Shown here: positions 28,001-53,900 of the stretch, piece by piece | How positions within the stretch are numbered: the first letter of the stretch is position 1 | How the letters are laid out: the number at the start of each line of letters is the position of its first letter | Translations under genes and position numbers: made by a program | Notes under the pieces: model-generated | What the model saw: the letters and a program-made list of their open reading frames with translations, nothing else | The model's database searches: none | Told to the model about the DNA's origin: nothing | Source: Trichoplax adhaerens | Lineage: Eukaryota > Animalia > Placozoa | Direction of reading: 5' to 3' | Length of the DNA stretch: 64,000 bases | NCBI RefSeq assembly: GCF_000150275.1 | Contig: NW_002060943.1 | Location: 2,570,462 to 2,634,461, forward strand

Positions 28001-30825
28001 AATATAAGAAAAATGTCAGGTGATAGAATACCGTTCAGCATTGGCATGATAGCAATGAACAAAGTGGGGTGAAAAATGTTCGATAGCGTGGACGAGTTTG
28101 AAGGTATTATTAATAAAAAAAAAACTGCCCTAGCAAGAAAAGAAAGAGTAGACTAATAAGAAGAACATTTCAACTGAATGCGTTCTATTTTGTAACAGGA
28201 GAGAACTAGTGCAAAAAGTTTTCAATGCGGTTAGAGTATGTATGGACCGGCTTTAAATATGGCTAGCAGCTGTACATCTTTATGCCCAATTTGACCATTA
28301 AGAGCGATTTTATTCTTTTACTGTGCCATATCATGAAGATGGAAATGACACGGATCATTCTAGTGCAATCAGTAACGACTCGATGATGATGATCGTATTG
28401 GCTAAGAGTGGACACTTGGATGGGAATAGATCGGAATATCATTTTTGGTGGGGGTATCTTTCATTAAAGTTGGCAAACTTGCAATGTTCCAAGTCAGTGC
28501 AAGACAGTATTACCGATGTGCTTTTTTGTGCTATTCAGAATATATATACACACAACACTAGAATGCCGTCTAGGTAGGCATGTGTAAGGGAGACGAATGA
28601 GAAATTTTCACATTTAATCGATTGGACGTAGGCGAATTGATTCTTTAATTACCAGCATCATTATCATCTTTGCCAATTTTATTTTAAATAAGGCTGGGCT
28701 AAACCAGTCCATGGATGCGTCTTGAATCGCCATCATCAAATCCATATTGGAAGTCAGAGATGAATGTAAAATATCGATGTTCATCTATTGAACTGATTGG
28801 GGGTTATCCGTTTGGGGATTATTATTCAATATAAGGCTGGACTAGATACGGATATAGTGATAGCTTTGAAATCCAACTGGCTTTAGAGTGTTTGTGATTC
28901 AGCATCAGTTGAAAGACGGCTAACAATCCAATACTACAACACGATTTAAGCATTTTTCACATCATCATCAAGGTGTTTTCCATGGGTTGAAAAAAACAGG
29001 AAAGAAAAAGAAATACGTACAGATGCCTATGTAGAAATCTGGATGATGATATCGTCGTATCGTTGAATAACGATGATTGGTTATCGATCAGCTTATACAT
29101 GATATCTTGGCTGTTGCCCAAAAGGGGTATTTGGCCTGCCCCAAAATAGAAATGATTCATTTTGAGCGACAGGCATTGATCGTTTATAAGGATGTCCTTT
29201 TAACACGAGCAAATGGAAGATAATATGAATCATCACGCATTAGGCTTAACGTCCAATTCATTGCATATTCATCAAGGCAAATGGAACAGAGCGATAGAAA
29301 AGGTTTGAAAAGTATGGACAGTATTTGCTAGGTGATCGGCAAAAAGCAAATAACTCAGTGGAGAGACATTGACGCTGTTTTTTTAATTTTTTTCCGCCAT
29401 CTTGAATAGGGGGATACTTTGACATTAGTTAGTTACTGATTTCAAAGTTGGACGATGATCATTTTGCAGAGGGGGGCAGATGGACCATTTTTTTGCGCTT
29501 TATAAAAATGGAATGGCAATGATGTTTCGATTAATAAATTCATGAAGGCAGCGATATAACCCGACCATCGTTTCTCATGATACAGCTTAGAGATGGCTGT
29601 AGACCTTGCGAGCGCTTGCAAACTTTGTTATTGGAGTCCAATGATGGATTGCAATATCCATTGCATTGCATTGCATCGATGGAAGGGCATTTTCAATAGT
29701 ATTGATAGGGAAATCTTTGTCAACAGTCAAGTTATTGGAGTAGCCATTTGAAGACCAAGGTGAAATCATCATGCTCTGTTAGGGTATATCGCTTGTAATC
29801 AAGCAAACTACAGCAACAAAGTGATAACACCATTCAGTGGCTAATTTTCTATATTAACTGAACTGGTATTTCCTCATTCTTCTATTAGAATGATTGAAGA
29901 CGATTGAGAATCTACGGTAAATCATCATCTAATCTGTGTGGCACAATTCAAAAGAATTGTCGTTCGATATTGCATTTTATTTTCAAACTAGGGGATGGAA
30001 AGGGCATTTATCTTGTGGTCGATAGGATGCAATGGCGTCGGTCGGATTAACCATGAAGAAAGGAATGGCAGGGACTACTTTTGAGGGGGGGGGGAAAAGA
30101 GAAACGTTGAGGAAAAGACATCAACTTGCAATGGATAAAGGAGTTGGATGGGAGATGAAAGTAGTCTATGAGGAAGATGATGGTTGCAATGGCTAATACA
30201 GTTCAGAAATGGAATTCTAAAAAGCGAAACGATGGCCGATGAAGCATTGGCTGCAGCCATGGTTGGTGGTGATAGAAAGTCAGGGATCGATACGCAAACA
30301 GTAGGTTGAACTGGATACGATCGTATTATGGCTAGCATGGATGGATAACAATCGTTATCAACAAGACTGAGAGGGATATTTAGGAATGATCTCGGCGATT
30401 GCTTTATCGAGTAGAGTAGTCCATGTCGAAAGGATCGGCAAGCAAGGAAGAGAGTAATATTGAAAATGAGGTTTACTAACGATTCTATTGCGGCAAAGTA
30501 CAGTATAGAGTTTGCTACAAGGTATTGGGAAAATCAATCCATATTGAAGATGGTATTGATTGGATCGCGGCGAAGGTAAAGGGGGGGGGGGAAAAAAAAA
30601 AATCTTGTACACTACTGTACGAGGTTGGTAAAAGGACAATTCAAACAACATGTGCCATAGTCAAGGGTTATTTTGGTGGCTCAAGTATGCAAGCAATGTT
30701 GACTTGGATAAAAGATCAAGTCTGTCTACTTACTCCATTGCTGGTAGCAAATAGGATTCTTTCAATTGAGTGAAATGTTCGGCTAAATTAGCGGTCGCTT
30801 CGACAACAAATACAACATCCGCCAT
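22050..30825 (-). CDS. MED25: Mediator subunit 25 (VWA domain, Pro/Thr-rich linker, ACID/PTOV domain, Gln-rich tail)
   Basis: First coding exon 30825-30734 reads MADVVFVVEATANLAEHFTQLKESYLLPAM. Later exons give QYGLIAF...QWLDSLRFNGGGVEEYSAIEDGLGVALQ, CILVCNSSP, LSVISPRRISALCKLYDK, HHLVLLKG, the ACID-like WPRQLILRFVP and LLILTYNPKKNFTGYIPRDQ, and poly-Q last exons. Some internal boundaries are approximate. Confidence 0.9.
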
Positions 30826-31491
30826 TGCAAGTAGTAATGTGTTACCACTTGCAAGTCAATATGTGATGATGATCGTATCCAAGGCCAATAGAATGGTCTC
30901 CAACCTAGATGAAAGAAAAGAATGATGATGATGACTATTTCTCTGCTATCCATCGATCTTGACTCATTGTATTCTATCCATGGATGATGGATCATTTCAA
31001 TCCTTTCTCCACTTCTTTCCCGTGGTCATCTTACCCGATTGCTTCCAGCCTGCTGACGCTTGCGACGTGTTGCTTTCCACTAGTGGATAATGTCAGCCAA
31101 TAGCACAGTCGTTGTTGAAGAAGAAGGAGATAACCGATGAAAATCAGCACGATTGCAAAGTTGAAGATGGATTGCTGCTATTCCACTTTAGCTTGAGCAT
31201 CGACGACTTGCTGCTGATCAATGTTCCACTTACCTCCCAACCACGACTATACAGACTGAGGGGGGGGGGCTGCCGGGGCCTCGACACGTACGTCATCAAC
31301 GCAGTTGACGCTCAGTAATAGACAAACAGTGGTATGACGACAAGGAACGTTCGATCGCGGCCTAGTGATCACTCGCCTGGAGGATGACTTGATCAGGTAG
31401 TTCGTCCTGCAAGGGTTGGCGTTGCAGGCTTGAGGTCAGGTGTGCGTCGCTTTCAGCCGCCGACGGTCGATACTTTCCGCAGGATGTCGTG

Positions 31492-32340
31492 ACCTACAGT
31501 ACTGTACACTGTACAGTCTACAGTCTATGGTCTACAGTACTGTTCCAACTGGATGTTGTGTCATACAGTACAGTACTGTACTGTACTGTACAGTCTACAG
31601 TCTACACTCTACAGTATAGTACTGTTCGAACTGGATGTTGTGCCATACTGTACTGTGCACTGTGCAGTACAGTATAGCCTACTGTACAGTCTACAGTCTA
31701 CAGTCTACCCTTCAAACTGGATGTTATGCCATACTGTACTGTACTGTCTACAGTCTACAGTCTACACTCTACGGTACTGTTCGAGCTGGACTGGACTCAC
31801 TTGTGTCTGGATTAACCTGTTCGAGAAGGACTGTACAGTACAGTGTATTGTACAGTGGAGACAGTTGTGACTGGATTCACCTGTACTGTATCAACTCGTC
31901 AACACTCACTTTTGCCCATAGCCTTTGTCCAGCTCGCCATAAACTAGTCGGCAACCACAGACTGTACTGTACTGTATACTGTACAGTATAGTAGTCTCAA
32001 TAGGTAGTAAAATATACTGTATATAATTACAACATGCCGGAGACGACTGTACACTATAGTATTAGTACTGTCCTGTCTACAGTGTACAGTGTACAATACA
32101 GTGTACTGTACCATTTTTCGACAGTACATCGTACTGTAAGGTACAGTACCATACAGTACATTGTACAGTACTGTACAGGACGTCCATTGGACTTCACTAG
32201 ACTGTGCTATGTCTCGATCAATTATCAATTTCTATACTGTACAACTAAGAGAGTTGATCCATTACACTTTTGCCCCTATCGACACATACAGTACATACAC
32301 TGTAAAATGAAGCCCCTTGACCTGCTGTACTGTACCGCAC
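31492..32340. repeat. TACAG/CTGTA simple-sequence island between divergent MED25 and HEAT genes
   Basis: Dense GTACAGTACTGTAC and (CTACAGT)n, interrupted by a repeated AACTGGATGTTGTGCCATAC core. Confidence 0.9.
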
Positions 32341-33271
32341 AATGGACACGATTGTTATTGTCCTACAAGCCGGCGGCATCAGCTCGCTGCTCAAACACTC
32401 CATCGAGTGTAGCCTGAGCCAGTCAAGATAGCAAACGTTGCTGACTCAGCAACCAGCTTCTACTAGGTGGACGGTACTCTGCAACTTTGCATTGTCAGCA
32501 GGAAACTTGGAATGGCTCCTATTCAAGATTGATTTGATATTTTGGATAGCTTCTACTCGTAGACAGTTGGCATTGAGCTCTATTGCAGTTAGCATTACTT
32601 GGCTATCGAGAATACCTGAACTGTAGCATCGAACTGGATTCAATCGACAAGCAAATCTGTCAATTCAACACGCTGTACAACATTGCACAAGTCCATCATC
32701 AAACTTTGTTGGTAAGCAACCACTAGATTACAATAATCATCATACGTAACCAGCTCAATGGAGCCTTGCTTTCCCTAAAGCATGTTACCAGTTTACAATA
32801 GATTAAGATGCATTTCATCAGATCATTTCATATTTGTGTTGATGTACCCAGTGGATGATAGTATAAACAACAAATTGTCCAAGGCACAGTACTAGTCCAA
32901 CGAGATTGAATGCAATCGTTCGGACAATGGACTGCAACTTGTTATTCTACTGTCATCAATTTGGATGCCTACTGTCCATGATGTGTTCATTATGAATAAA
33001 TCATGCCTTGCCGAAATAGCCATCGTCAAGTCTTCATTACTGTACAATATTCTACTCGATGAAATGTTGTTGTTGACCACAGCATCAATAGTGTTTCATC
33101 GACGGCATACTACTATTAGACAGCACTGTACAGTACAGTATTGGTAGTCGGATAATATTCAATCGATGAGCTTAGTCCTTCTCATCGTAGAGAACGACGA
33201 TAACGATTCATAATTTCTTCATCATTTCATTATCTTCAAAGATAAATTCAAGTTGATCATTCTGAAATAAA

Positions 33272-36200
33272 ATGGATCCCAATCGTGATCAGTGGTGTAC
33301 CTTACTCAGTAGTCACAACAAGCTTGATCGTGATAAAGGATTAAGCCAATTGACCGATCAAATTAACCTTGGCCTCAATGACATCACCCATGTTGAAAAT
33401 AGCTTAATAACATTGATACAAGCGACAGACCGATGGGAATCATGTCAAGGTGGACTGCTAGCAAGTAAATTGCTACTTTTACATATACCGCAATGTAGTC
33501 AAGATTTCATTGGTCACCTTCAAGACTCTTGCACCCATTTACTTCAACATTCCGAAGCAAGAGTTCGATTTGCGGCAGGTACGATATAAAAATGATAATA
33601 TAGCATCAAAAATGAATTCCTTATTCACAGTCAATCCCTTCAATGGCTTACGCGGTTAATTATCCATGTGATGCCATTGAAATCGACTCGTACAGTTTGA
33701 AATGACACGCTTTATGAGATAACCATGGCATAGATAGACTTCCATGGACTTCAACAGGAGCACTATTGATGATGTAGAGACTATTCGAGATGACGTGAAC
33801 AATTTTCCATTTATAAATGACACCACTAAATTATTTCTTTTTGCATCATTTACAATAGGTGAGGTGGCAGGTGCACTTTGCAAACGTCTTGGCCATGTAG
33901 CTTATCAACACTTTCAACATGGAGTATTGCAATCCATTCGTGATAACATGGAACGTTCAATGGAACTTTTAGACGCCTTAGCCATGCAACAACTCAAGGA
34001 TAAAATGCTGCCAAAATCTCCTGATAAAGATACCAAAAATGAAGTACGTCTACCATTGCTTAACGGATGCGCACGATAAAAATACACTTTAAATTGTAAA
34101 TGACATAACATACTCTCTCTTTTTTATGTACGCATCTATTTGTGTAAACCAATATCCAGCCGCAATCAAAGGATGATAATCTTATCTCCAAAATATTACA
34201 CGATACCGCTGGTTGGCAATCATTAGAAACAGGCATGCAGTAAGTGTTACTAATTTTTATTCGTTATTTATTTGTGTTGTTAACAAAATCAAACGCCTTA
34301 AAGAATAGCAAAAAGGTCAAGTTATTTCTAACCAACACATGCATCGTTTCATTTTGATATGAACTTATCGGCATCGTTCATTTTCTTTAATTGTATACAT
34401 TTTGACGTTCTATAGATTACGCTCCCTGTAAATTATACATTGCTTAAGAATTTAATACTGACATCAGTAACATGGTTATTTTATCTGTGAATATCATGGA
34501 CCACAGGTTACAAATAATTTGCATAGACACAATAGAATAATCTTATTCTCCATGTATTCCTCATCAAGGTGTTTAGAATGCATGATTGATGGTTGTGGTA
34601 AGAAATTTCATCCGTACATAAATAATGAACTCTTGGAATTACTATTTGAAACAACAAAACATACTAACCGATGTGTAAGGGAAATTGGATTTCGAACACT
34701 CGGGGTACTCATCAAAAGTGAATTAGGATCAAACGGTACATGTCAATCTAATTGTGTATGAAATATCATCTTGCATATACAGTAATCGTAGTTGATCAAT
34801 TCTTCTAACTATCAACCTAACGGCAATGTAATAGAGAAAGGTACACTGCAACCCGGCTATAAAGAAACAAAATGTTGGGAAAAAGGTACGCAATTTGTCG
34901 ACGTTTTGGTCGCTGGACTATCCGATAATTGGAGCCAGGTATGACGTTATGACATATGTATATGAAGACAAAATTACATTCTACCTACCAAAGTAATTTT
35001 TTTATTTAGCAAGTTGTTTTTGATTTTTTATTAAAATCTATGCCTATTATTCTATCAATCAGGTACGATTGGCAGCTTCTATTGCCACTCGCCAAATGCT
35101 TACTATCCTTACGGATGTTGATGCTAGTAAACGTTATTTTCCCAGCATTCTACCACCAATGTGCTTGAATAGGTATCCGCAACAATAGTATAGTCGACTT
35201 ATCTAGAAAAATGAACAATTTAACTAAAGATTGCTCGAATATGGATATGAATCTGATCATTACCAACTTACGATGATAAATTGTACATGACGTGATTGCC
35301 AAAAATTATCACTATTTACCTTGTAGATACTATATCGCTGAAGGTGTACGAAATTATTCACAAGAAAATTGGCGATTAACTGTAGGACCTGATGGGCGAA
35401 ATTTGGTAGAATCGTACGTAGCGGACTTTGTAAGTATGCTATAACATTGATGCAACCCAATCAATTTCAACAACTATGAATTACAGTATATATATATACT
35501 AATAAGGTGATTATGAATGCATTTAATTATGGCTAGATTAATAAATAACAATTATAACAACCTCTTCTAGGTAAAGTTTTATGTGCAGCAAACCAATGCT
35601 GACAATCATGCTGTTCGTGAAGCTGCTTGTGTTTGTATAGCGGAACTTGGTCAAAAAGTAAGTCAAAACATTAGTCAACCCAGCTACAGGAAATAAATCA
35701 CTTTAGAAATTGGAAATTATGCTGTTTTATTTATGCCGTATATATTCGTACAGTATGTAAATATACTCCGTTCAGTTAAGTAAGTTACTATTCGAGATCA
35801 TAGTTAATATAAAGAATGTAGTATAACGATGAAACTGATTAATTTAATCTAGATTTCTCCCGAATGTCTACATCCATTCGTGCAACAATTGATTGCTACT
35901 CTCCTGGTATGTTTCAAAGATCAAAGTTGGCCAGTTAGAGATGGTAAGTTTTCGTTGATGACTCCAACAGCTATAGATGTATTGCATTTTTGAAACTTTT
36001 AAATATCGATTATTTTTGCTCATGTTAATGTTTACTGTTTTCAGCTGCATGTTTAGCTTGTGGAAATTTTATAAGCTGCTTTCCGGAACCTTGCCGGTTT
36101 ACCAACTCATCCTTTTTATGTAATAATTTGATTTCATTCCACAATCTTAACCAATTATCATTTTTTATTACCACTCTTCGTAGACCTTCCCTGAGTGAAC

Positions 36201-37481
36201 TTCATGATTTATTTGTTAAGAACTTATCGGACAGTATACAGTCCGTTCGGCAAGGCGCTGCTATATCTTTAGCCAAAGTAGCAGAAGTATACGGTTAGTT
36301 AATAGTCATAAATGCCTAAATTTTGTTATCCACAAGATGATCGTAGCTGCTAATTTTTCCTATAATTATAAAATTTATTTAGGAAACGATGAATACATTG
36401 TTATTGAGAAAACAATTATCCAAGGCTTAGCTAAAATGAAGGATCAACCAGCTGATGCCAAAAGGTAATAACTATTTGCACTAAGTACGGTTAGTATTGC
36501 AAATTTGTGATACCATTATATATATATTAATTATCAGATACTCGTCAATGGATCCTAGCCCTGCTGTATACAGTGTTGCAAAAAGAATACGTGATAATGA
36601 AGCAGATTTACATACTAATCGCATGGTTTGCTATTTTATATATAAAATGTATTATGGTGAGACATATCCTATTAGCGTTCTAATTTGAGATCTCAAATTC
36701 GTTAACATTACAGACATATTCATGTGGCTCTCTTGCTCCTAAGCTGGGAAAAGGTGATACTGAGAACGAAATGTCAAAATTTTACAAGCAACCTGAGCCT
36801 TGGGAACTAGCAGATGGGTTAGTACTCTTTAGCTTTAATATTCGTATTATTAGCCTTTGCTAGCATTTTAGTTTATAGCTATTTTTAAAAAAATATTTTT
36901 TTTGCATAGCTGTGTTCACCTTATAGCTGAATTAAGCAGAGTGTCTACCTTCCACACGAACATAAGCAAGTTGTTACCCGCGATTGCTGAAGCTGGTAGA
37001 TACAAACAGTATTCTCAGCACGTATTTTTCTACGAAACCATTTGTAAACAGGTAAGAAATTACGCTTAATAAATTTCCATGTACAAGCTATACCTAGCTA
37101 AAACAATTTCATACGCAGATATTACAATGACAGTTTTTATCGCTATAGCTACCTATCATTGCTGAAAAGTTAGGAAAGCGTGTTTTTAAGCCTTACTGGA
37201 TGAATTTCATGGACATTGTGTTTGAGAGCTTGGTAAACATAATATAGCCGTGTCTAAATGATATCAGTTAGGCATCATTTCTTGTAACTAATTTTAATAT
37301 ATCGCAAAATATGATTCTTTATTTACTGCAGTCTTCGGAATGCTCGTTGACGTCTCACGCCGCTCGTGAATGTTTACAATTTTTTAGCAAGAATTTTGGC
37401 CCTAAAATATTGCGCGGGCGTGTTGAGGAATTTAATCCAAATTACGTGTCCCTTCTTGATAGTGTTATACGTGTGGCATAA
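33272..37481 (+). CDS. Multi-exon HEAT/ARM-repeat protein, specific identity not recognised
   Basis: In-phase GT-AG exons encode HEAT-like units: SEARVRFAAGEVAGAL, LSDNWSQVRLAAS, ADNHAVREAACVCIAELG, FKDQSWPVRDAACLACG, LSDSIQSVRQGAA. Also HDTAGWQSLET and MCLNRYYIAEGVR. Ends GPKILRGRVEE...VA*. Confidence 0.85.
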
Positions 37482-38965
37482 ATTAATATGTTTTGTCAAC
37501 TTAATGTTTGTTAACAATAATTCTCAAAATTTTGCAGAATTTCCATTTAGTTTAGGCTAACAAGATCCCTTTATGTTACCTTACTTGTTCTGTTCTATTT
37601 CTTTTAAATAATTTTATTGTATAAGCTATTTTACCTTCTAGAAATAAAGAGCTTACGCTGTAGTATAAATTACTTCATTCACATAGTATTAGCGCTGAAA
37701 CAGTACGATAGTATCCTTATTGAACCCTTAGCTGCTTAAAGGTTGTCGTTATACTGGTATTGCAAATAACATTTCATAATTTCCTAAACATAGGGGATTA
37801 AATAGTAACTTCTTTTATCTGCAATTTTCTACACCAAAATAACCAGTACAAAAGATGTCTAGTATTGACTAGATAAATTATCAGATTGTCTGAATAAATG
37901 TTATGAAGAACTAATCCTGATCGGTGTCTCCTTGCATGGGAATGACAATGTTATGTGGAAATCATATGCAGTAATTAAGATATAGAAACAGATTGTACTG
38001 TACGAGTATTAAACAATTTCTTATTTTTTTCGTCATTGAACTAGCGCAGACGTGCAGGACAGCATGCTTGAATATTAGTATTTGATCAGTTGTAATTATA
38101 ACCCGTCAGATTAAGTGATGTACCAACGCATTATCTCCGAATAGAAACGCGCTATGTAGTATGATCCGACGTAAGTCTGCTTAACAGTATCCATACGAAA
38201 GTAAAATATTAATGCCTTGGATTGTGTATGATATATGGAATGGTGCAAATTGTACATGAGTTGCTGTAGAAAAATTACCGAAACTTATATATAATACATG
38301 CGGCATTTATCACGTCATGACGTTTTGTAAAAATGAATCCAAGTACACTATAGAACTTATAAAAGTGACTTTTTAATACAAGAATTAATTATTACTTAAT
38401 TTAATTTCATTGAATAAATTAAATAGTAAATTATAGCATATATTTATAGTGAACTCGTATACCACATAGAATGTATATGTACTTCGAATAAACGTAAGTA
38501 CAACATTATTATATTAACGGAGATATGGTATCGTAGTTCCTCTTATTAGCTTTTACAAATATTTAATTTACACGATACTACATTTTATAGATTTTCCATA
38601 ATATATCACGTAGTGGCACATAGAATTTATATACGTTAATATGTAAAATATATATTTATCACTGGTTCCATGCGGGAGGTACTCTTTCATCTCAAAGTAA
38701 TAGATCTTAATTAATGTACATTTTATATAGATATATGTATTCATTTTATATAAAGGTCAAAAATACTTCATAAGCAAGGTCTATAGAAAAATTAAGTCGT
38801 TTATGCATACTTCTAGACATACATTGTAAATCACCATCACATGTAGTTATGAAACTGGAAATCGGATTGTAATAAGTAAGAATATAGTACCGAATTATGT
38901 AAAGTCAACTTATTAAATATACTCCATGTTGTAGTTGCAATAAACAAGTGTGAGTTTTACGTACT

Positions 38966-41900
38966 TCACAAGATACAACAGTTGCCATCCTATAAATACG
39001 AAAAGACGCAGCAATATTAGCCTACCCTTTGTATTGTTGAATTATAGAAACATCAAGAATAGCAATTTCTAAAAGCAATTGATGGCATTAAAGTAGTGCT
39101 GTACAAAGAATATTTCTTAAAAATCTTACGCTTCGTTTTCCTGTAGATTGACTTTGTCCAGGGCGAGATTGAGATGACGCCTGCACTGTCGGATTTTCAG
39201 CTCGCATTTGACCCCGTGAAGATGTATTTGCTCCAGCTGGAGGCATTTCCGTCATGGGATTACTTTGTAAAGCGCTGCGTTTTGAGGTCGTTTCAGTATG
39301 ATGATATTCATCAAATTGAAGTCGCCATGCTAATGCCTCACTTTATCAATGGAAAAAAGTCAAGTCTTACTTTAATGTATACTTTTACCGGACAGTCATG
39401 CATGATGAACTTATTATCATTCATATGCTAACAATCAATAAATAGAACATACCTGCTTAACTCATCTCCTTGACACACTGTATCAGTAGTGGTAAAATCT
39501 TGCGTAGGAACATCCTCAGGTAATGCATTAGGCACAACGGTTGAATCATTATGTGGCACTGATTCACTTATTCCAGTAGTTTGTCCATCAAGTTCCTTCT
39601 GCTCTTGTAAAGCGATCATATGACTGTAAATGCAGATAATCGACAACGCATATTAGGATCATGGAAAAAATTGTTGCAGGCAGCATAACACGGTAATTGA
39701 TAATTTAGTGCAAAGAATTTTAAGATATTTTGGACTTACTCTAACTTCTCTTGTGATACTCGATCATTATTCGGATCATACTGGATAGATAAATTTGTTG
39801 ATCCATTATTTATATCTGACTCTATGAGCCGTTGTTCATCTACTGGTGCTGCCTGGTTTACATCAAAGTTTTCCGTTCGACCCTGAGAGCTAACAGTTTT
39901 AAATTCGTGATTGACAAGTGATGAATCTCCTTCTATATTGGATAGTGTTTCCCAAACAATTTCTTTTTCGGTGGAATAGCCAATATCAGTAACGAGAATG
40001 AATAATTCATCCTAAGGACGTAGCATATACGTAATAAAATAATGTCATTGTTGGATAAAGATAGTCAAATGAAGTTATTTGATAGGATATCGCAAAGATA
40101 TATCAGTTGTTTTCAGAATTTAGAATACGTGATAATTTTACCTTATGCTTATATAGAGTACTGTAATGATTATTTCGGAATAATACACACAACTGTTCAG
40201 GTTTTAATTCTTCGTATAACGTATAGAGACCATGATAAGTCAATTGAGAGGCAGTGCTGTTGAGGAATTGTTCCGCAATTAAACCTAAAATTTATTAAAG
40301 TAAAATAGCTTAGAGTGTAAAACTGAAGCAACTTGATGGACGCATTCAATTGTATCCGCCGATAATGTGGGTCAGCACCAATTCTAAATTTAGATACCTT
40401 CCGTTATTCGGCTACTATCATTGCTAGACTTTGAAGATATAATCATTTCGACTAGCTCGTTATAGCTACGATTTCCGATAATAGATTTTTCTTCCTGATT
40501 CTGTGGATCGACTAGCCATCCATGATAAAGGTTGATATCAAGTAAGTCAAAAACGATCAAATTGCACGTCCATTCAAACTGATTGATACTGCAGGATAAA
40601 AGTGCGACGTTAGTTATGTCAAGACTACATGTATTACCATGAAGATTTTATGCTAGTATTTAATATAATAAATTATAAAGTAGAACAATTACTTTAATAT
40701 ACTGTAGTATTTTTTGCTATCAACTATTTCTACGTCAAGCAATTTCTATTGAAACTATCACATGGTAATGGTATGAATTGGAAAATGAAGTTGTTGATGA
40801 TAAATGTAATCTATTTGCAAGGACTACTGAAACGTTTTGACTTTTATGTGTTAGTTTATTTCTCTTTTTGGATATCATGATTTATTACTTACAAGTATAT
40901 TAGGTGTAGTGTAGGTTTTTTATACCGTAGTATAATTTTAATGCAACAAAATACTACTAATTAATTATTCCATTCGATGGATTTGTATCAGTGTTAGTTT
41001 TATATTTCATCGGAGAACTATATTGTAGCTACAATCGTTTTCTAGTGTAGCTTATTTTAGGAGACTAGTAAGTTAACTCAGAATTTCTTCACTATTGCTA
41101 TCTCAGTGGCAATCAGTTGTTTTTTCATCGCATTAATTAGGACGGATACATAGGGCCGAAAAAGTACGATTGATATTTAGTTGATTATTGGAATATTTGT
41201 GTACTAATCGATACAGTTTTCCAAGTGCTGTATAATGTGATATACTATTTTGAAAGATAGCGGATAGACTAATCATACAATAAATTACAATAGTGTCGGC
41301 TTTAAGACAGGAAATTAGAATAGTAAATTGCTGACAATAAATTATCCTGATCATTTTTTGCGTTGCCTACTTGCTGGTCACTATTTCTGCTGTAAATATT
41401 TTGGGATTCGTAGACTTGATAACGCGTTCGATGCTGATAGAAATACGAAATGAACTAAAATCTATTTTACAAGATGACCTGTTAGCTAGTCGAAGAATTA
41501 GTTAGGCAACACTAGTACTTATATAGACTGAGATGGTCCATTACATCAATTTTATCGTAAAGAATAGCTCAATGAGATGAAGTGATCCTTTGCGACAGAA
41601 ATGGATTCTGAAAGTTTAAGAATCTATATCTCCGATATGATTATCGATTGAGATGAGTAGATATTTCTAATGGAGGCGAAATGATTAGGGTAAAATAAAT
41701 TGAATTATTACTACATTTGAAATATACCGATTTCAAAATATTGGTTTATAAACTTTCATGTAGCTTATTGAAAATTTCTCTGTCTTGAATGACTTACCCT
41801 CCAAATTTGACGTTAATATCGACACCAGTTTCTAATACACTAAGTGATGATATAGCATCGTTGACATTTTGATCGTAATCAAGGCTGTTTTCAAATGCCT

Positions 41901-44900
41901 ATAAAATAAAGCATTTGGATATAAATCATTCATTTTTGCATTATGAGATCAACAATCTTGAATTCGTATCTCGATTGAATGAGCTAATATGAGTTCATAA
42001 GCCAAAGATAACCGCATCCTAATTAGTTTGTGTCTGAATATTAATCGTTGTACTGTACTGATGTTATATTACATCGTCAAATCATGAAGTAGTGTTGTAA
42101 CATGATTATGAGTACAAAGATAGAAAGGATCGATTATCCTTTTCCATACCGTCGTATCCGCTATACAAGTATGTTAACTATCTAGTGTAGAATAACAGAT
42201 CATAATTAATATTAATTCTTGTGTTGATTGATATCATATCGAAAAAGAAACAGTATCGTAACATGATTACGACTAGAAAGCAAGGAAAGGATCGATTTTT
42301 CTTTTTCCATACTATCGTATCCACTGTACCAGTATATATAGTATTAACTATCCAGTCTAGAATAACAGATGATAATTGATTTGTGTCTGTGAATATTCAT
42401 TCTTGTGATGATTTATATTTCATGGAAAAATAAGTAATGTCGTAACATGATTACGACTACAAAGATGGAAAAGAACGATTCTTCTTTTTTCATACTATCG
42501 TATCCATTATACGAGTATATTAACTATGCAGTGTCTCGATAATAGATCATCATTGGTTTGTGTCTGAATATTCATTCTTGTGTTGACTGATATTACATTG
42601 AAAAATAAGCAGTGTCGTAATATGATTACGACTACAAAGATGGAAAAGCTGGTTTCTTCTTTTCCATACTATACCATACCATCGTATCTACTATACGAAT
42701 ATTAACTATCCAGTCTAGAGAATATTGTTTGCACGAATTGTTTCTGATAAACATTTTAACCTAGTTTTGGGTTAAAGCTCTTTGATACAATAATTTCGAT
42801 AATCCTAAGGAAATCAAGGGTTTAGCGATAGCACATGGCAAGTGAAACATTATATTTGATGCCATCATCCCTGCTACAGAATATGAATCTCAACATGATA
42901 TAGACTAACTTATTTATTTCAATATGCGAAACACCAATTGTGCCTAGTTGTAGCACTCTTGCACCATCATACTGTTGCATGACGATGAAGTTCAGTGTAA
43001 TATGATAGCCATATGATGGAAAGAATGGACATAACATTATTCTTGCATTCAACATTGATGAATTGCTGCTGTCTAGAGTCTATAGTTTTAATCTCTGTCC
43101 TAATCTGCAGTTGATTTACAGTCAGTCAGGTTTAACTCTTTTATGTCAAACATGATAGTTATTAGATTGGAGGAATCCATTTCAGACGATCACATCCGGT
43201 ATTCGTTATTACTGTCTGCAGTGCCTAACAACCTTTGTAGCAGCAATACACGGTTGATTTACAGTCAAGTCGAATTCCATCACCTCTAACATGATTGCTA
43301 TAAAATTCAAGGAATCGATTAGTCCTTACCCTTACATTATTTCATACTGTGATTATCCTTTTCAATACTATTCTATCCAATATCATAATCGGCTTGTAGC
43401 TGGAAGCTAATTCCGAGCTGAATTCGATATTGTCATTTTAGCTTACAATTCAATCAAACGGTGTTATGACACGACTACGACTGCAAGGATAGCAGGAATT
43501 GATTAAATATCCTTTTGACACCAGCCAAGATCCATTGTCTAGTATCTACAGTAGTTGCTAATCCTTGTACTATCATGCTGGTGATTGATGATTTAGCTAA
43601 ACGCTTTTACCTTATGTAGAACAATGGGTAGGAAGCCTAGAGATGGATAGAATCAATTATCCTTTTTCAGACTGCCACATTTTCGGCCTGTGGTTGATTG
43701 TTATTTCTCATCCGAATTGATATCATGTCGTTCATTAGCAACGCAATGGAACGATATGATCCTACTGTACTTAGCTCCTTCTACTAGTATATTGTAGATT
43801 GACGGTCCAATCCAACAATTTTATAACTTGAACTAATAGAAAGATTGAGGGAATCCATCTAGTCCTGTTCGATACTATAGTATCCAATATCTCAATTGGT
43901 TGGTATCTAGGTGTTAATCCTTACAAAGTACATCATCTTGCTGATTGACAGTCTAGTCAAGCTAATCAAACTACAGTACTGTAGAAGATGGGTGAGATCG
44001 AGTTGGTAAAAAGATGATTTTGAACGATTGATTGTACGCTCTATTCGGATATCATCGATCCATCAGCCCATGGTATTAGTTTGTACTGTATATTGTTGTC
44101 TTTCCCTTCCAAAAATAGTCAAAGTTGATTTTTTTTGTCTATTTCTATTGTAATGTAGTGTTGGATTCTATCTCCTGCTGTGGAATCTCCTTTCATATCA
44201 TGACGTTGGAAATAAATAATGGAGGAGGATTTTGTATATTATACAGTAGATGAAAGCAAGAGAGAAGAGCGAGCGGGAAAAAATGAAGAAATGACATGAT
44301 TTTTACCTTTGGTCGTAGTGTGAGTAATGTATTTACCAAATTTTCCATCAATTCTTCACTGGTAATATACTCTCGTCCAGCAGAGAAAGTAATTTTTCGC
44401 GTTAATAATAAAATATTGATAATAGCAATAAGAGGACAAGGTCCATTAATATTTTGTGTGACTATAGGTGTTGACGTCTCTTTCCATTGGATCCATTTAA
44501 TTAGATAGAAATTGGTAGCTACCATTGGATCCATGGGTGAAGGTTGATTTTCTTCATCGTTGGCTTGCAGAGTTTGATCGTTGGGATCGCTAGAACATGG
44601 CTGATTGTTTTCTTCATCCTTGTCTTGAAGAGTTTGATCGTTGGAATCGCTAGAACATGGCTGATTGTTTTCTTCATCCTTGTCTGGAAGAGTTTGATCG
44701 TTGGAATCGCTAGAACATGGCTGATTGTTTTCTTCATCCTTGTCTTGAAGAGTTTGATGGTTGGGATCGCTAGGACATGGCTGATTGTTTTCTTCATTGT
44801 TGGCTTGAAGAGTTTGATGGTTGGGATCGCTAGGACATGGCTGATTGTTTTCTTCATCGTTGGCTTGCAGAGTTTGATGGTTGGGATCGCTAGGACATGG

Positions 44901-45686
44901 CTGATTGTTTTCTTCATCGTTGGCTTGAAGAGTTTGATGGTTGGGATCGCTAGGACATGACTGATTGTTTTCTTCATCCTTGTCTTGAAGAGTTTGATGG
45001 TTGGGATCGCTAGGACATGGCTGATTGTTTTCTTCATCGTTGGCTTGAAGAGTTTGATGGTTGGGATCGCTAGGACATGGCTGATTGTTTTCTTCATCCT
45101 TGTCTTGAAGAGTTTGATGGTTGGGATCGCTAGGACATGGCTGATTGTTTTCTTCATCGTTGTCTTGAAGAGTTTGATGGTTGGGATCGCTTGGACATGG
45201 CTGATAGATTGTTTCTTCATTTTTAACTACAGTCATGGTAACATTTTCATCATCACGACATTGGGCTTGATGACTGATATCGCTAGGAGTGTATTCTTTT
45301 GCTTGAGTTGTCGTTGTGGAATCCATGGGTGTCTGATCCTGCTGTTGATGGGATAGATCAGGATAGGTGATGTTGAAAGCTTCATCGATGGCTTGATCCA
45401 TGGCCATATCGAGCATGATTGTATCGTCTCCATCTTCATCATCATCTTGTTGTCCACTGAGCTTGCTAATATCATGACTGACTTGATGGGTGTCTATAGA
45501 CGATTGGATAGCATCCTTCTCTTGGTTATCCAGTAAATTCGTCTGTTGTACGTCGACATGGGCTATTTGCCTCTCTTCATCTTGCTGCTGATCGTTCTCC
45601 AGTTGTTTTGGTCTGGCAGTTTGATCATCATTGGCGGTAGCATTTTGTAGTGGATCACGGCGATGACAGTGTGCACTCTCTTCCAT
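38966..45686 (-). CDS. MINDY1/2 (FAM63)-family deubiquitinase, about 8 coding exons
   Basis: TQNINGPCPLIAI (catalytic Cys), GVDINVKF, LYHGWLVDPQ, TASQLTYHGL, FRNNHYS (catalytic His), LVTDIGY and VWETL. MIU-like helices DHMIALQEQ and EALAWRLQFDE. Last exon 38989-38966 reads DGNCCIL* (CaaX). MINDY1 cannot be distinguished from MINDY2 by eye. Confidence 0.93.
42010..42720. repeat. Diverged ~160-185 bp tandem repeat, 4 copies, in the first coding-region intron of MINDY
   Basis: GTAACATGATTACGACTACAAAGAT.GAAA recurs at about 42097, 42258, 42442 and 42617. Confidence 0.8.
44547..45203 (-). repeat. Coding 60-bp minisatellite, 11 copies (QPCPSDPNHQTLQ[D/A][K/N]DEENN)
   Basis: Exact 60-bp period, visible as near-identical consecutive sequence lines, in frame within the MINDY first coding exon. 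Confidence 0.97.
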
Positions 45687-45939
45687 TCTGTTGGGCCTTG
45701 ATAATCACCAATAGGATGGATAGAAGATGATTTCCAATCAATTTGGTCAATTGGATTGCATTCTATCCCATCAAAGTTAATGGCTTAAGAGTGGGAGACA
45801 CCAATGGATTGATTGTCTCCTTTTCCACCTAGGCAAATAGGCTGCAAATGTCGTCAAGGGTAGCAAACATGGCTGACGATGTTATAGTAAAAGGCTTGGC
45901 TGACATCAAGGAAGTAGCGGTTGGGGAGGGGGGATTGCG

Positions 45940-47840
45940 GTTGTACAGTACACCCGTACTTGTGAATGGCGTACTGTACACTGTACACTGTACTGGGCAG
46001 ATTGGATCTGTCCATCCATCGTCTCTGACTGTGCGGAGCGTACAGTGTACAGGTTACAGTCAGGGACTTGGAGACGAATACAGTACTGTACACTGTAGAC
46101 TGCAGGAAGGGTCAATCCATCCTGGGGTTAGTCCCACTTCTCATCCAGTACTTGTGACTGTAGTGTGTAGACAGGATCCAAGTGGAGAAAGGAGCTGATA
46201 CACTTACCATACAGTCCATACTGTGGGATATAGTTGCCCAAAAACATAAAATCATCTTTTATTGGCTATAATAATACTTTCTTAAGTAATGAAATCGAAA
46301 ATTCGTTCTGTTGGCTATTTCAACGTATCAACTTACATTCCTTTCCGTCACCACCCACTACAGTACAATCTGTACAGTACGCTTACGATACAAGTCTCGC
46401 CCAATGCATAATGTGCGATTGTGCGTACTGTAGGGTACAGTACTGTACTGTACACTGCTACACTGTTGGTGTACCATCTACAGTGAGTACAGTAGACTTT
46501 ACTGTACAGTACAGTACTGTGTATCAATGATGTGACGAGCTCCACTCAACACGATACGACATGGTCATAGAGAGTCTCTACAGTACTATAGTCTTCAGTC
46601 TACAGTCTACAGTCGGAGAAAGTACACGTGTACAGTACAGTGTACTGTAGGCCAATTGCCAACAGTCTACAGTACAACGGACAGTGTACAATGTACAGTA
46701 ATGTGACGTGTACAGTACTGTACAGTACTCCACTTAACACGATACTGTATGACATGGTTAGCTAACTTAGCTTCATCGAGAAGGTCTCTAGTCTTCTTCA
46801 GTCTACAGTCAACAGTCTACAATGTACAATCTACAGTCTACAATCGACAGTCTACAGCGACGAAAGTCCGTCGGCCAATTGTCCAGTCCATCTTGCTAGC
46901 AAGTTGGACTGGAAACCAAGAAACTCTTCAGTCTACAGTCTTCAGTCTTCAGTCTACAGTCTACAGTCTACAGCCTACAGTCTACAGTCGGAGAAAGTCC
47001 GTCGGCCAATTGTCCAGTCCATCTTGCTAGCAAGTTGGACTGGAAACCAAGAAACTCTGCAGTCGACAGTCTTCAGTCTACAGTCTACAGTCTACAGTCT
47101 ACAGTCTACAGTGGGAGAAAGTCCGTCGGCCAATTGTCCAGTCCATCTTGCTAGCAAGATGGACTGGAAACCAAGAAACTCTGCAGTCGACAGTCTTCAG
47201 TCTTCAGTCTACAGTCTACAGTCTACAGTCTACAGTGGGAGAAAGTCCGTCGGCCAATTGTCCAGTCCATCTTGTTAGCAAGTTGGACTGGAAACCAAGA
47301 AACTCTTCAGTCGACAGTCTACAGTACAGTCTACAGTCTACAGTCTACAGTACAGTCGTCAGTCGTCTGTCTTCAGTCTACAGTCTACAGTCTACTGTAC
47401 TGTACAGTGTACAGTACAGTACTGTACAATCGACAATCGATAGTCTACAGTCTACAGTCTACAATCGACAGTCTACAGTCTACTGTACTGTACAGTACGT
47501 ACTGTACAATCGACAATCGACAGTCTACAGTCTACAGTACAGTCTACAATCGACAGTCTACAGTACAGTCGACAGGTGGAGAAAGTCCGTCGGCCAATTG
47601 TCCAGTCCATCTTGCTAGCAAGTTGGACTGGAAACCAAGTACTGTACACTGTACAGTACAGTACTGTACTGTACTGTACACTGTACAGTCGTCAGTCGTC
47701 TGTCTTCAGTCTACAGTCTACAGTCTACAGTCTACAGTCTACAATCGACAGTCTACAGTCGACAGGTGGAGAAAGTCCGTCGGCCAATTGGCCCCCATTC
47801 AGTCATTGCCCATCTTGCTAGCAAGTTGGACTGGAAACCA
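45940..47840. repeat. TACAG/CTACAGT island with a core-plus-spacer array between divergent MINDY and TBC1D9
   Basis: (CTACAGT)n and GTACAGTAC tracts, with a ~60-bp core at 46862, 46993, 47117, 47241, 47581 and 47771. Confidence 0.93.
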
Positions 47841-47973: not shown

Positions 47974-50900
47974 ATGTGGATCAAACCAGATGAAGTGTTA
48001 TTAACCAATGCATTATGGTAGGTAGATGCCAAGATGGCATGTTGTTGTTGTTGCCTTTTCTGCCACCATCAGTGGTGACAATATTGATATTTGTCCCATC
48101 TGGTCTAGCATATTTTTTTGGGGGGGCCAAGGTCTCCATCCTAAAGTAAGTAGACATGTCATGATGGCCAATCGATCTCTTCTTCATTGCCTTGACGTCA
48201 CGACAACCATGATGATCCACCATGATGAAATCATCATTGTACAAGATTGTAGCTAGGATAGTCATGATTGCGCCCAGTCATTTCCTTCTTGCATTGATGG
48301 TCTTTCTTTCTCTCTCTCTCTTCCTCGCTAGGGTGAATGAACGTTCCAATCACTTTTTTACCTTACAACGCCGGCGTGGACATGGCTCAACTGGATTGGC
48401 ATCGCTCTTTATTGGAACCATCGATAATGTCCTTGATTCAAAGGTAAATCTTTTCCATCACTTTATACAACTCTTGTAGCCAGGCAGGATACAGTAGTCG
48501 TACATCAACATTGCTAGGCATCATCAACACAACAGCCACTTACATCGCAAAGTACATGGAAAATGCTCCATTTCCATCATCATCAACTTTAGTTACAACC
48601 CTAATTATGCATACTTTACAGCATACTTGCAATCAACGATCTCAACCCAAGGATGCAATCCTTCCTTCCTTAGTTTATCCTCGATCGGGCCGATGGCCTG
48701 ATGCAAGGTATCCATTGGAAAATTTATCAGTCTACTACAGTCAAATACATCAATCTTGCAAGCATCCATTCTCATCACAAATCATCTTGCCCATGTTGAC
48801 ATCCTTGGATGATATGCGGATATCATGGCTAACCCTATCGTCCAGTTGTCAATCGTGACTAGTCTACTACAGACTGCCTCATGAAAACATGCAGCAAACA
48901 AATTCATTTTCCACCTTTTTTCCACTTTCCAACCACGATGGCAGCCTAGTCAAGATGGGTACTTGTATCTGTTTATGGGTGGACAATTTAAGGCCCACAA
49001 TGTTGTTGTACTCTATCGGCCAACATCAATTGTAATCAATTTTAGTTTACATCTGCTATCCTCCCCATGACTCTTAGCATACAGTACAGTACAGCAAGAT
49101 CCGTTATCCATTTGCTTATCTTTTCATTAATCCTAATTGATTCTTTTCTCCTTCTGCCCAATGGATTAGCCGGCGCCTTACCGAATTTTATCTCAAACAA
49201 CCAACACGGAAATTAGCTATGGTAAGTCTATTTGGAGCTCAATTTTTTTTTCCAAGGGGGAGGAATACGCTTGAGTTCATCTCTCATCTACTTCCATCTT
49301 TTGTATCCCTCTATTTGCCTGTTTATTATTTAAAACATGTCCACTACTACCCAACGGTTATTCAACAACAACCTAAACCATGACTACTGTACTATAACAA
49401 GATTCCCGCTGCCTAGAAGGATAACAAGCTGAAGACAACCTTTCCACATAGACCATATTGATCCATGCTTCATGGATTACAACTCTTTTCTTTCTTTTTT
49501 TAATTTTAACCCATTCAAACTACCATAGCGTTGTATTAGATCCAAACCAAGTCTAAATTATAATCTTCTTGCAAATGTGCATGATCAATAAGTGGTGTAG
49601 AGCTAGAACTGCAATCAATGATTAATCAATCGTTCAACGATCGATTCATGAATGGGTGCTTGCAAAACAATCATCCTATGGGGAAAACAACGTCAATGAT
49701 TGTTGCCATTTTCTTCTGCCATAGCCAATTGGTGTTGTGAAAAATGGCTGATAGTACGATATGCTGTAGGATAGCTATCGATAAATTGTACATTGCCTGC
49801 CCAGGAAAGAGTGATTCTTTATCATCAATCGATCCTTGGTCTCCCATCGTGCCCTACCAAGTCTGTTTGTAGGCCAACAATCATCGCAGATGGCAAAGTT
49901 TGTCCATTGCTTACGATCGTTAATCACCTTCTTAAAGTCCTTACGTTACCAATAGTCTACAAGATAGACTGAGCAAGGATAGCACACTCAACAAAAATAC
50001 CTATGGCGATGGATGAGATCCAGTGTCATTTTACTCTTACAAAAGGATTCCAAAAATACGGTAGAAAATAGACTAGCAAAATGAGGACTAAGCAAGGGTA
50101 GCATGCTGAACAAATTCTCTACATGTTGTAATGACTACAAGTCCTCACTTTCCTTTTGATTACTCGCTTATTTTGCGTCCATTTTTTCTTTGGGAGGGGG
50201 AGCCAGTAATCCCTAGTATCAAAGAATGCACAACAGCAAGGATAACGTAGTAAATGGCGACTGGTTAGAATGACTACAAATCCTCATTTTACTTTGACAA
50301 CATGGAAAAAAATAGGATATGGTACGATGGCTACAACTTCTCGCTGTATTTTTAGAACATAGACGATAACATAGCAAGCGCATACTGCGATAAATGAAAT
50401 CGCTCTCTTTCCTTTCACCAAGGGGTGCACAAGATTGAGGAGAACGTGCCAAGTAAAATCTTGCACCCCTTGATTACCCACTGCCATTTACATTGAATTC
50501 AATGTAAAGCGTCAGCAATAATGTTCCTAAATAGATGGCTATCAACACTGGATTGTCAATCAGAAAATGATAGTTTACATCCCTAGCATGGATGAACTAT
50601 TCTAGCCAACATCCAACATGCATGTTGTCCATTTTCCCACGATAGCAAACTGTCAATAATATCCACTAATTACTCCATTGAATGCGGAGGAAATCAATAT
50701 CAAAGTGCAATAGATCCATATCGGCCATGGACAAGATCATATTATCCAAGCATGGTAGCAACCAATACTCCTGAGAAAGGACCATTGTGAGATCGCAATG
50801 GAAGTACTATGTCTTCTACTCGGCTACCTTACTATTGACATTGGCAAGTATTGCATTTCTGCTATAATCCATGAATAGCAGACAATCACTTGATTAAAAT

Positions 50901-53900
50901 TGTCTGCTTCCAAGTTCAAAAGGCTGGGCGAACATATTGTCCAGTGGACATAGCCTACTGTCCATACGCAAGACAACGACGACTTGCATTCATGTTGTTC
51001 TTCGCCATTTTCCTTTTTCATCGACTAGCCTGCTGGCATGCAACCTTGTTGTCATAAATTGCATGCACTCTTTTTTGCCGCTAGTCCTTGCTATCCACAT
51101 CATGTTTGGTCTCTAATCTTGACAACAATGGATACTCTCCTATCCTCAAAGCATCGGCTAGGAAACCTGATGTTATGGATATATTAGACGAATGTCTGCA
51201 TTGAGTATTGTTGTCATGGACATGATGGACTACTTTTCCCAATACTGTCTCCATCCTATTTGGTCCAAGATGTTGACAAAAATGGATCTTTCCCTATCCT
51301 CCAACGACTTACTGTAGATACATCGGCTTTGCTGTATCTAAAAAAGTAGATTCCCTATCAAGTAACCCTAGGCGATGTTGATATCAAACTAATGTCTACA
51401 TTTAGTAGTATTTTTGTCATGGATATGATGGACCACTTTTCCCAATACTGTCTCTATCCTATTTGGTCCAAGATGTGGACAAAAATGGATCTTTCCCTAT
51501 CCTCCAACAACTTACTGTAGATACATCGGCTTTGCTGTATCTAAAAAAGTAGATTCCCTATCAAGTAACCCTAGGCGATGTTGATATCAAACTAATGTCT
51601 ACATTTAGTAGTATTTTTGTCATGGATATGATGGACCACTTTTCCCAATACTGTCTCTATCCTATTTGGTCCAAGATGTGGACAAAAATGGATCTTTCCC
51701 TATCCTCCAACGACTTACTGTAGATACATCGGCTTTGCTGTATCTAAAAAAGTAGATTCCCTATCAAGTAACCCTAGGCGATGTTGATATCAAACTAATG
51801 TCTACATTTAGTAGTATTGTTATCATGGGCATGATGGACTACTTTTCCCAATACTGTTGTCGTTGCGATCCACATCATGTTTGGTCGAGGATCTTGATAA
51901 GAATGAATATTCTCCTATCCTCCAATATTTCCACTATGGAAAATTGCGAAATCAGCTTAAACAAATAACAAACATGGAGGATTCCTAAATCAACCTTGAC
52001 AGTAACTTTCAAGTGAAAATCAACACCCTGCTACAAGTCCAATCCATTTCCTTTTACTACTCTATATCCCATTGAAGACACTTTGGTCGAGGCCAAGGAT
52101 AAGTCTAAAACGAATGGATCGAATACAACCTACAGTAGTCTACATTAGCGCAAGGCAACCCATTTCCCTTGGATCAAAGTATGACTACCTTGAATCTACT
52201 CTCAATCAACAGTCTATCCAATATCTCAAAAGATAGAAACTTGATTATTCCCTTCTTTGATCTCATTTGTAATTCTTTTACTCTACTCTCTCTATTCATT
52301 ATTTTGCTTGTATTTATTTACTTAAAAGGCCACAATAGAATCGATTTCAATAATATCCATGAATAGTAGATACATAGGATATTGTTATCGTGGTATCCCT
52401 ATTTTGTCGGAGGAAAGAGGGACATTTTCGCTCTCAGTAAAGCACTGCATCCTATCTTCCAAGACGAGTAAGTTCTTGAAATGCCTTGAAAAGACGACAC
52501 CGCTTCCAAAGATCCCACAACTATTCCAGTATCGATCAGTAAAATCAACTCATTTCTTGACTAACATCATCACTTGCTGGAAAAAATCGATCCATTGAAG
52601 AGTACATCATTAATGGGACTGATTCTATCTATATACTGTAATTATCATCAGTCTCCATTCAGTTTAGCATCCAATTGATTGTATTCTCTATTTGCAATGG
52701 TATTGACTTTCATTCAATCTTAATTACCAGAATATCCAATAATTTGGTCAATAATATTGACTGTGCACCTGTCTACATGTACAAATCGACTATGATTGAT
52801 ATAGTGATCGACGATAGAATATAGAATGACATTGTTGCATGCAAGGTGAGGAATAATGCCAATAGATTAGTAGTATTTCTAATTGATGAAGAAAATCATC
52901 AACAACCATGATGGATTGATTCAAACAATACACGAGTGTTATTCAGAATAGGAGTGAAATCTTAGGATAGAGGAAGAAAAGTCCTCAAGAGCTACAAATG
53001 ATTGCTATGCGATGACGCCATTCTACTAAATGGATTAATGATGCACATAGACTATTCTAATTGTCGCCAAGTCGTTCATTGAATGCTATTACTAATAGAC
53101 AAGAGATCTGCGATGATACCATCTTATTCTACGACAAGGCCTAGCGATCTTTAGCGCTAACGATAAAATACTAAACTGTAATCGTCTACTAAGGAATTTT
53201 CTGAACTTCAACAAATTGTCCTCGGTCATTTTCAGCTCATGTCATCGATTTCCACTAGGAAGGGAAAAAATGATTATCGTTGCATCGAGAACCGCATAGT
53301 CATTCATTTGCTATCGATACAGTATATGGATACAAAAATTCCAGTAAAAGTGAAAAATATCTACTATACTGCATGTAAAATATCCTTTCAAACTAGAGCA
53401 ACAGTAGAAGAAAATAGTTGTTGACTCGATAGCCATTCAAATATCAATAATGAATTACTGTAATTCTATCAATTATTGACCTAAAGAATAGCAGCAAAGT
53501 ACAATCGATTATGATAGAAAGCTTTTATTTTCCAAATACTTTATTAATTAAATTAATGGAAAACACGTTGATCTTATTTTGGGGATGCTATTGTTGTCAT
53601 CCTGTAAGCCTATAAATTTGCAATCTCTTATCCGTTGTAATGTAATTTAGGCTATTACAGGTATGATGATGGCTCTTGTTCGCTTAATCAGACTAATTGT
53701 GTTCTACTTTGCTTGACTTAATAGTTATTGCTGCTGGATTAACTCGTGAAGAAATTATGGAGCATTGGCTGTGGCTGGAAGAAAATTTACTTCCAACTTT
53801 AGGTAATTACTGATTGGATTAAATATCAATCAGATGAAACAATTTTTATTCTGGACGCCATTCTCTTAAAAATTTCAATGTTTAATACATTTTAAAAATG

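Follow-up and report, generated by a model that had tools for sequence, protein, structure and literature searches.

What fills the space between divergently transcribed genes in Trichoplax adhaerens, and what might it do there? The question is raised by 64,000 nucleotides of the genome of this placozoan (contig NW_002060943.1, positions 2,570,462 to 2,634,461; hereafter the window), in which two intergenic regions, 31492-32340 (island 1) and 45940-47840 (island 2), are packed with the words TACAG and CTGTA. A first-pass annotation had read them as a candidate mark, comparable to CpG islands, for bidirectional housekeeping promoters. The analysis described here showed no new kind of element: the islands are the known Trichoplax ACAGT repeat, which has been in print since 2010. 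Our favoured explanation, to which we assign a probability of roughly 0.55, is that they are two unusually large local cases of the promoter-proximal ACAGT/ACTGT arrays of this animal, working as an upstream platform.

The repeat was described by Wang, Zhang, Meyer and Bao (2010, PMC2871265), who found that pentanucleotides dominate the Trichoplax microsatellites and that 78% of these are ACAGT. In their data, the 1 kb upstream of genes contained 54% of the ACAGT copies and the 5 kb upstream contained 85%; genes close to the repeat were enriched for translation and protein modification, and a transcription-factor binding site was proposed. The islands agree with this microsatellite in their tandem units, in the genome-wide over-representation of the unit, and in a distance of at most about 1 kb from a gene start. 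A network trained on T. adhaerens Micro-C data later recovered the "repeating motifs ACGG and ACAGT" (Chimaera, 2026; PMC12817080); its authors matched ACGG with the transposon motif reported by Kim et al. (2025) and made no comment on ACAGT. The caution of the first-pass annotation that the element may be partly described already is thus borne out by PMC2871265 and PMC12817080.

Word content of the islands and the genes around them

Island 1 contains 52 TACAG/CTGTA words, compared with a mean of 2.6 and a maximum of 7 in windows of the same size elsewhere. For island 2 the count is 94, and the corresponding mean and maximum are 5.8 and 11. With the two islands excepted, the background is about 1.5 words per 500 bp. 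Counted as ACAGT and ACTGT, the words number 28 and 31 in island 1 and 76 and 29 in island 2. The 14-nt palindromes GTACAGTACTGTAC and GTACTGTACAGTAC were found twice in island 1, six times in island 2, and nowhere in the remaining 61 kb. The heptamer CTACAGT is present in 10 copies in island 1, in 39 copies (4 on the other strand) in island 2, and in 9 copies elsewhere in the window.

Alignment of the two islands with each other matched only runs of the shared words, at most 39 nt long, and no significant alignment between them was obtained after the words had been masked. The islands therefore share a vocabulary without alignable sequence, as the annotation had stated. Its suggestion of repeated amplification was also supported. 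In island 1, pentamer arrays of ACAGT/ACTGT are mixed with the heptamers, and the left 300 bp consist of three copies (~80% alike) of a higher-order unit of 85-100 bp. Island 2 combines pentamer arrays in both orientations, CTACAGT heptamers and higher-order repeats, including 4.5 copies of a 124-bp unit on the + strand (46802-47358, 90% identity). This unit is composed of a (TCTACAG)n run and a spacer of ~62 bp, in which a CCAAT box and a palindrome of 30 nt are found. Six copies of the spacer, all on one strand, start at 46866, 46997, 47121, 47245, 47585 and 47775. The spacer was considered as a dispersed element and rejected, as its core was found genome-wide only in these six local copies.

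The comparison with CpG islands failed on composition. The G+C content is 42% in island 1 and 45% in island 2, and 34% in the window, and the observed/expected ratio of CpG is 0.40 and 0.59 in the islands versus 0.86 elsewhere in the window; a CpG island should reach about 0.6 or more and exceed its surroundings. A proposed connection with the ACTACA motif of ZNF143/THAP11 found no support either: ACTACA/TGTAGT is absent from island 1 and occurs twice in island 2 (ACTACA alone, 0 and 1), compared with 53 occurrences in the rest of the window.

In single-strand folding, the arrays fall far below shuffled sequences (z = -3.4 at 31492-31790, z = -8.5 at 47360-47700). This would fit a purely structural element, in which hairpins or cruciforms form under negative supercoiling between the diverging genes, or in which nucleosomes are excluded by the sequence itself, with no dedicated protein involved. 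The location between diverging transcription units also fits. However, the strong self-folding arises because the two orientations are mixed, so that self-complementarity is automatic, and the arrays are short, most runs comprising 2-3 perfect units. We regard a structural role of this kind as very unlikely.

Both islands fill the space between genes arranged head to head. At island 1, contigs of four RNA or probable-RNA runs were aligned to 29000-34999. Spliced contigs define the 5′ end of MED25 on the - strand (30734-31252): the untranslated exon 1 extends from 31033 to about 31252, the intron (30903-31032) has GT..AG borders on that strand, and exon 2 (30734-30902) opens the coding sequence (ATG at 30825) and encodes the beginning of the Med25_VWA domain. 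On the other side, RNA contigs define the 5′ end of a HEAT-like gene on the + strand (32478-34941), with an untranslated exon 1 from about 32478 to 32710, later exons at 33241-33576 (with the ATG), 33857-34043, 34160-34239, 34569-34734 and 34834-34941, and GT..AG borders at all introns. The HEAT match itself, at 36029-36295, is weak (E 0.0018, below the cut-off). The transcript 5′ ends, at ~31252 for MED25 and ~32478 for the HEAT-like gene, are 140-240 bp outside the array. The unique sequence between them and the array (31253-31491 and 32341-32477) was not covered by any contig of this locus in the four runs, and the array was cross-matched by many contigs from other loci.

At island 2, the ATG codons of the two genes flank the island. 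The first coding exon of a MINDY deubiquitinase gene (44193-45686, - strand) encodes 497 aa from an ATG at 45686, ~250 bp from the island, and later exons are located at 40393-40647 and 39739-40011 on the same strand. The opposite neighbour is a TBC1D9-like gene on the + strand, with a first coding exon at 47974-48018, whose ATG is ~130 bp from the right edge of the island. Its encoded N-terminus is one that we take to resemble that of human TBC1D9, and downstream exons match the GRAM (54959-55222) and RabGAP-TBC (57929-58207) domains of Pfam. In all these assignments, the exons were searched singly against Pfam, and most single-exon scans gave no match. We conclude that the two islands are real, and that the tracts are supported as promoter-associated sequences, lying here between diverging transcript 5′ ends.

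Array grammar and the question of transposon footprints

Genome-wide counts were made in the T. adhaerens assembly, which comprises 105.6 Mb in 1414 contigs and carries the window on a 13.26-Mb scaffold. Reversed patterns used as controls gave 0 to 3 sites. The pattern (GTACN)3GTAC was found at 7632 sites, (TACWG)4 at 6117 sites, and (ACAGT)4, in both orientations, at 1454 sites (reversed control, 0). With G or C as the spacer, (GTACS)3GTAC, only 33 sites were found, 28 of them homogeneous. The spacer was A or T in ~94% of cases, as estimated from 50 listed sites, versus 66% A+T in the genome. Distances between GTAC words were determined in 264 kb, namely the window together with the 200 kb to its left, which was our sample outside the window. 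A distance of 5 bp occurred 114 times, 7 bp 35 times, and any other at most 9 times, with 5-9 occurrences for the majority of these.

In GTAC-W-GTAC-W-GTAC, the two spacers were AA in 4851 cases genome-wide, TT in 5064, AT in 3495 and TA in 3225. Adjacent spacers are thus identical in 59.6% of cases (random order, 50%), about 40% of units differ in orientation from their neighbour, and the frequencies of the two palindromic junctions are about equal (3495 vs 3225). The array is, therefore, GTAC repeated every 5 bp with a single free A/T spacer in near-random order. As GTAC is palindromic and the spacer is free to be A or T, the sequence looks alike from either strand. A general ACTG-N family was tried as the main rule and discarded, since the 1711 sites of (ACTGN)3ACTG are nearly all ACTGT. 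The heptamer, which the annotation had taken as part of a general vocabulary, does not hold that place: (CTACAGT)3 occurs at 32 sites genome-wide, 8 of them in island 2. The CTACAGT arrays arose by local amplification, as did the 124-bp repeat of island 2.

Many unplaced contigs of ~1 kb (for example, C100, C200 and C279) are largely composed of such arrays. This suggests that the repeats broke the assembly and that the genome-wide array counts are lower bounds.

A free central A/T between fixed bases is also what a cut-and-paste transposon would leave behind. TACAGTA and TACTGTA are the canonical footprints of Sleeping Beauty (PMC6943129). The arrays could accordingly be imagined as Tc1/mariner excision footprints stacked at TA in open promoter DNA and later stretched by slippage, left by an element that is now almost extinct, and possibly co-opted afterwards as a binding platform. 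Such an origin predicts a 5-bp unit with a random central A/T; same-letter neighbours make up 59.6%, versus 50% for random order. Most of the rare arrays with G/C spacers are homogeneous, the outcome expected from slippage alone. In the 264 kb, 182 isolated TACWGTA heptamers were counted outside the islands (~1 per 1.3 kb, mildly clustered), which is 2-4 times the expectation of ~44 from dinucleotides or ~90 under a third-order model; the corresponding counts for matched control palindromes were 54-67.

Several observations argue against this origin. Past the TA, 41 of 82 array run ends extend by 2-3 bases, while ~11% would be expected for pure scars; conversely, 34 of the 82 stop at TA (20% expected at random phase), and the sample is small. 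The model would call for tens of thousands of fixed events, and neither the 7-bp unit nor the G/C spacers are footprints. We know of no other genome in which footprints are piled up in this manner. No donor element with CAG...CTG ends was found in the genome, and one Tc1/IS630-like transposase ORF is present genome-wide, without detectable inverted ends. A mariner search of the genome gave no match, but the control genomes were equally blank, so absence is not shown by it; Wang et al. found just 11 degenerate fragments (PMC2871265). Taken together, we consider footprints a very unlikely source of the arrays. The transposase ORF, at L021:895-1971, is an intact reading frame of 358 aa with a helix-turn-helix and the sole DDE_3 match in the genome (Tc1/IS630 type), and from its sequence it may be a lone or domesticated copy.

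Promoter association and the weighing of function

In the 264 kb, 90 of the 103 GTAC-W-GTAC dimers are located within 5.3% of the sequence, around the islands. The left 200 kb contain about six more islands, all smaller than those in the window. Four of them could be tied to a gene start, three of these by Pfam matches. The first begins 55 bp upstream of the ATG of INTS2, the second lies 1.2 kb upstream of the N-terminal exon of glycogen synthase, and the third precedes by ~1.5 kb an exon of a small gene; this exon matches the rRNA_processing domain at its C-terminal end. The association of islands with gene 5′ ends, proposed from the window, thus extends to its neighbourhood. The fourth island is 240-430 bp upstream of a SCYL-like gene, which was named from a reading of its translation and has no Pfam match. 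Genes to the right of the INTS2 island, and those near the islands at roughly -157.6 kb, -94 kb (right side) and -25 kb, received no Pfam support.

A restriction to bidirectional promoters is not supported. Two of the neighbouring islands resemble single-gene promoters, as judged from open reading frames alone; codon-usage models (self-trained or trained on verified exons) and A/T and G/C skew did not separate the coding strand.

Two further observations concern the INTS2 island. A tRNA-Asp (GTC) gene with a trailing T-run is located in its middle, between INTS2 and the next gene (L004:457-529), and ACAGT-type arrays lie on both sides of it. In the INTS2 promoter, at L003:9880-9900, a short (GTACC)3 run with all units in one orientation, equivalent to an ACGG repeat when read from the opposite strand, directly adjoins arrays with A/T spacers. 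The two published Trichoplax motifs, ACGG and ACAGT, can therefore share one island.

Inside the window, the upstream region of a rhodopsin-type receptor gene (GPCR; 4143-5264, + strand), a promoter of cell-type style, and both convergent gene ends have background word counts, which agrees with the claim that dense tracts are absent there. The broader claim that they are absent from the rest of the window is correct for exact TACAG/CTGTA and incorrect for variant units: a third 5-bp-periodic array of ~650 bp (63280-63935) is found directly upstream of mTERF (62074-63285, - strand). Its units are ACTGA, ACTGC and ACTAA, not TACAG/CTGTA, with GTACCGTACGGTAC at the edge (63293). Such variants are a small minority genome-wide, and by its sequence the array looks like a variant of the ACAGT-type promoter arrays.

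Could the arrays be present at promoters for no reason other than that they are tolerated there? In this case they would be ordinary unstable micro- or minisatellites in nucleosome-free promoter DNA, expanding by slippage and unequal exchange and without function. The higher-order repeats are indeed locus-specific, the spacer of island 2 is unique to its locus, heptamer arrays are rare genome-wide, neither palindromic junction is preferred, and many small unplaced contigs are made of arrays. Two orthologous promoters of a relative, described below, also lack them. On the other hand, the other tandem repeats of the window (8963-9515, 42208-42719 and 51204-51857) are situated in introns or other non-promoter DNA, whereas the ACAGT unit is confined to promoters. 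GTAC is retained, and the share of A/T at the spacer is far above what base composition would give. Slippage should yield same-orientation runs, as in the G/C-spacer arrays (28 of 33 homogeneous), yet 40% of neighbouring units flip here. Moreover, the published gene-class enrichment (PMC2871265) and the Micro-C-trained model (PMC12817080) both point to the motif. A passive origin is, in our opinion, possible but doubtful.

A connection with genome folding has been proposed for another repeat of this species. Kim et al. (PMC12221973) reported promoter hubs for about one third of the genes, mostly housekeeping, and a motif located in Mutator ends. The islands might then be copies or relics of Mutator ends that carry the placozoan loop-anchor motif, which the annotation had brought up as a possible earlier description of the islands. 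Apart from the tie between loop-forming housekeeping promoters and motif-bearing Mutator ends made in PMC12221973, this idea is favoured by the G/C-spacer units (GTACC/GTACG, reading as ACGG) that stand beside A/T arrays at L003:9880-9900 and at 63293. However, PMC12817080 gives the transposon motif as an ACGG repeat and lists ACAGT separately. Island 1 has a single ACGG/CCGT and island 2 has 9, of which 8, all CCGT, come from the local spacer, itself unique to the locus; no tandem run of ACGG was found in either island. The 33 sites of (GTACS)3GTAC also compare poorly with the 7632 sites with any spacer. The link to the Mutator loop anchors fails on this indirect evidence, the motif being known here through its description in PMC12817080, and we hold a Mutator origin of the islands to be highly improbable.

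This brings us back to the favoured explanation, an upstream platform built of promoter-proximal ACAGT/ACTGT arrays. The genes that flank each island are of a broadly expressed type. Position and published correlations suggest that constitutive promoters use the arrays as upstream elements that work in either orientation. A putative factor that reads GTAC/ACAGT would find in them a multivalent platform, through which the region might stay open or insulated. The 7-bp CTACAGT derivative and the locus-specific higher-order units are products of tandem duplication, and slippage and unequal exchange would account for the growth and turnover of the arrays. A multivalent binding platform would be the most likely function. 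The annotation had likewise proposed a binding-site array tied to the three-dimensional genome; the binding-site idea is already present in PMC2871265 and a role in folding fits the ACAGT motif of PMC12817080, so this part of the proposal is in line with published work.

The following points weigh against this explanation. The near-random order of A and T and the equal junction counts give no sign that any one palindrome is selected. At island 1 the transcript ends were taken from assembled contigs, from which true start sites cannot be fixed, and we infer the function from position and published correlations. In addition, the comparison of orthologous promoters, which the annotation had recommended, turned out unfavourably. 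A relative was compared through exon-sized proteins and contigs of Logan runs, the first exons of INTS2 and the SCYL-like gene being 67% and 88% identical, respectively. Upstream of INTS2, the relative has 2 words in the 430 bp before the ATG, compared with 16 in T. adhaerens. Upstream of the SCYL-like gene, it has 6 words in 878 bp, compared with 17, and one short TACAGTACAGTAC is present; these upstream counts come from short-read contigs, which can break at repeats. There is thus moderate evidence that the arrays are not conserved at these two orthologous promoters.

True recruitment of a factor would make the arrays a simple, repeat-encoded mark of constitutive promoters and an organiser of promoter hubs, in an early-branching animal without CTCF-type loops. 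For experiments on this point, the window offers two clean bidirectional examples, supported by RNA and suited to deletion or pull-down.

An OMP decarboxylase exon of UMPS was located at 12266-12508 (+ strand), and PIFO, named by the annotation, was not located in the window; the annotation's count of only two head-to-head gene pairs applies to the genes mapped, which lie outside 14-29 kb. The first MINDY exon matches T. adhaerens TRIADDRAFT_18339 with 99% identity. This annotated protein (308 aa) spans just the last 15% of the 497-aa open frame, and a 60-bp unit is repeated 11 times in frame within the exon (44548-45205, 95% identity). The tandem repeat at 51204-51857 has 3.2 copies of a 203-bp unit with 97% identity, lies among the early TBC1D9-like exons and is unrelated to ACAGT words.

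Relation to known systems

The vertebrate CpG island, which served as the initial model, likewise marks housekeeping promoters, often bidirectional ones, by base composition, and the islands described here are G+C-richer than their surroundings (42-45% vs 34%). They differ in being depleted of CpG and in consisting of tandem arrays of one word. Another analogy is found in Drosophila, where GA-repeat arrays at promoters are bound by many copies of the GAGA factor, which keeps these promoters open. Both systems place short tandem words upstream of start sites, and by this analogy the Trichoplax arrays may work alike, although the word is another one and the factor is only hypothetical in placozoans.

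The footprint TAC(A/T)GTA of Tc1/Sleeping Beauty elements (PMC6943129) is identical to the array unit with its flanking TA, the free A/T included. The differences are that a matching donor was not found, that the arrays are confined to promoters, and that many run ends are not bounded by TA. The Mutator loop-anchor motif is shared in setting, as a promoter motif of mostly housekeeping genes in the same species. PMC12817080 describes that motif as an ACGG repeat (the text of PMC12221973 contains no logo), and the islands are neither ACGG repeats nor accompanied by transposon ends. The second motif of PMC12817080 is the same word, ACAGT, recovered there as a determinant of predicted contact maps; it is a model attribution, given without a locus-level description or a link to gene orientation.

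The closest system is the microsatellite of Wang et al. (PMC2871265), with which the islands share the genome, the unit, the position upstream of genes and the proposal of a binding site. The 2010 study counted perfect same-orientation repeats only, whereas the islands have mixed A/T spacers, a 7-bp derivative and locus-specific higher-order repeats. What is added here is a sharper description of this known repeat as a strand-symmetric array of GTAC words with a 5-bp period and a free A/T between them.

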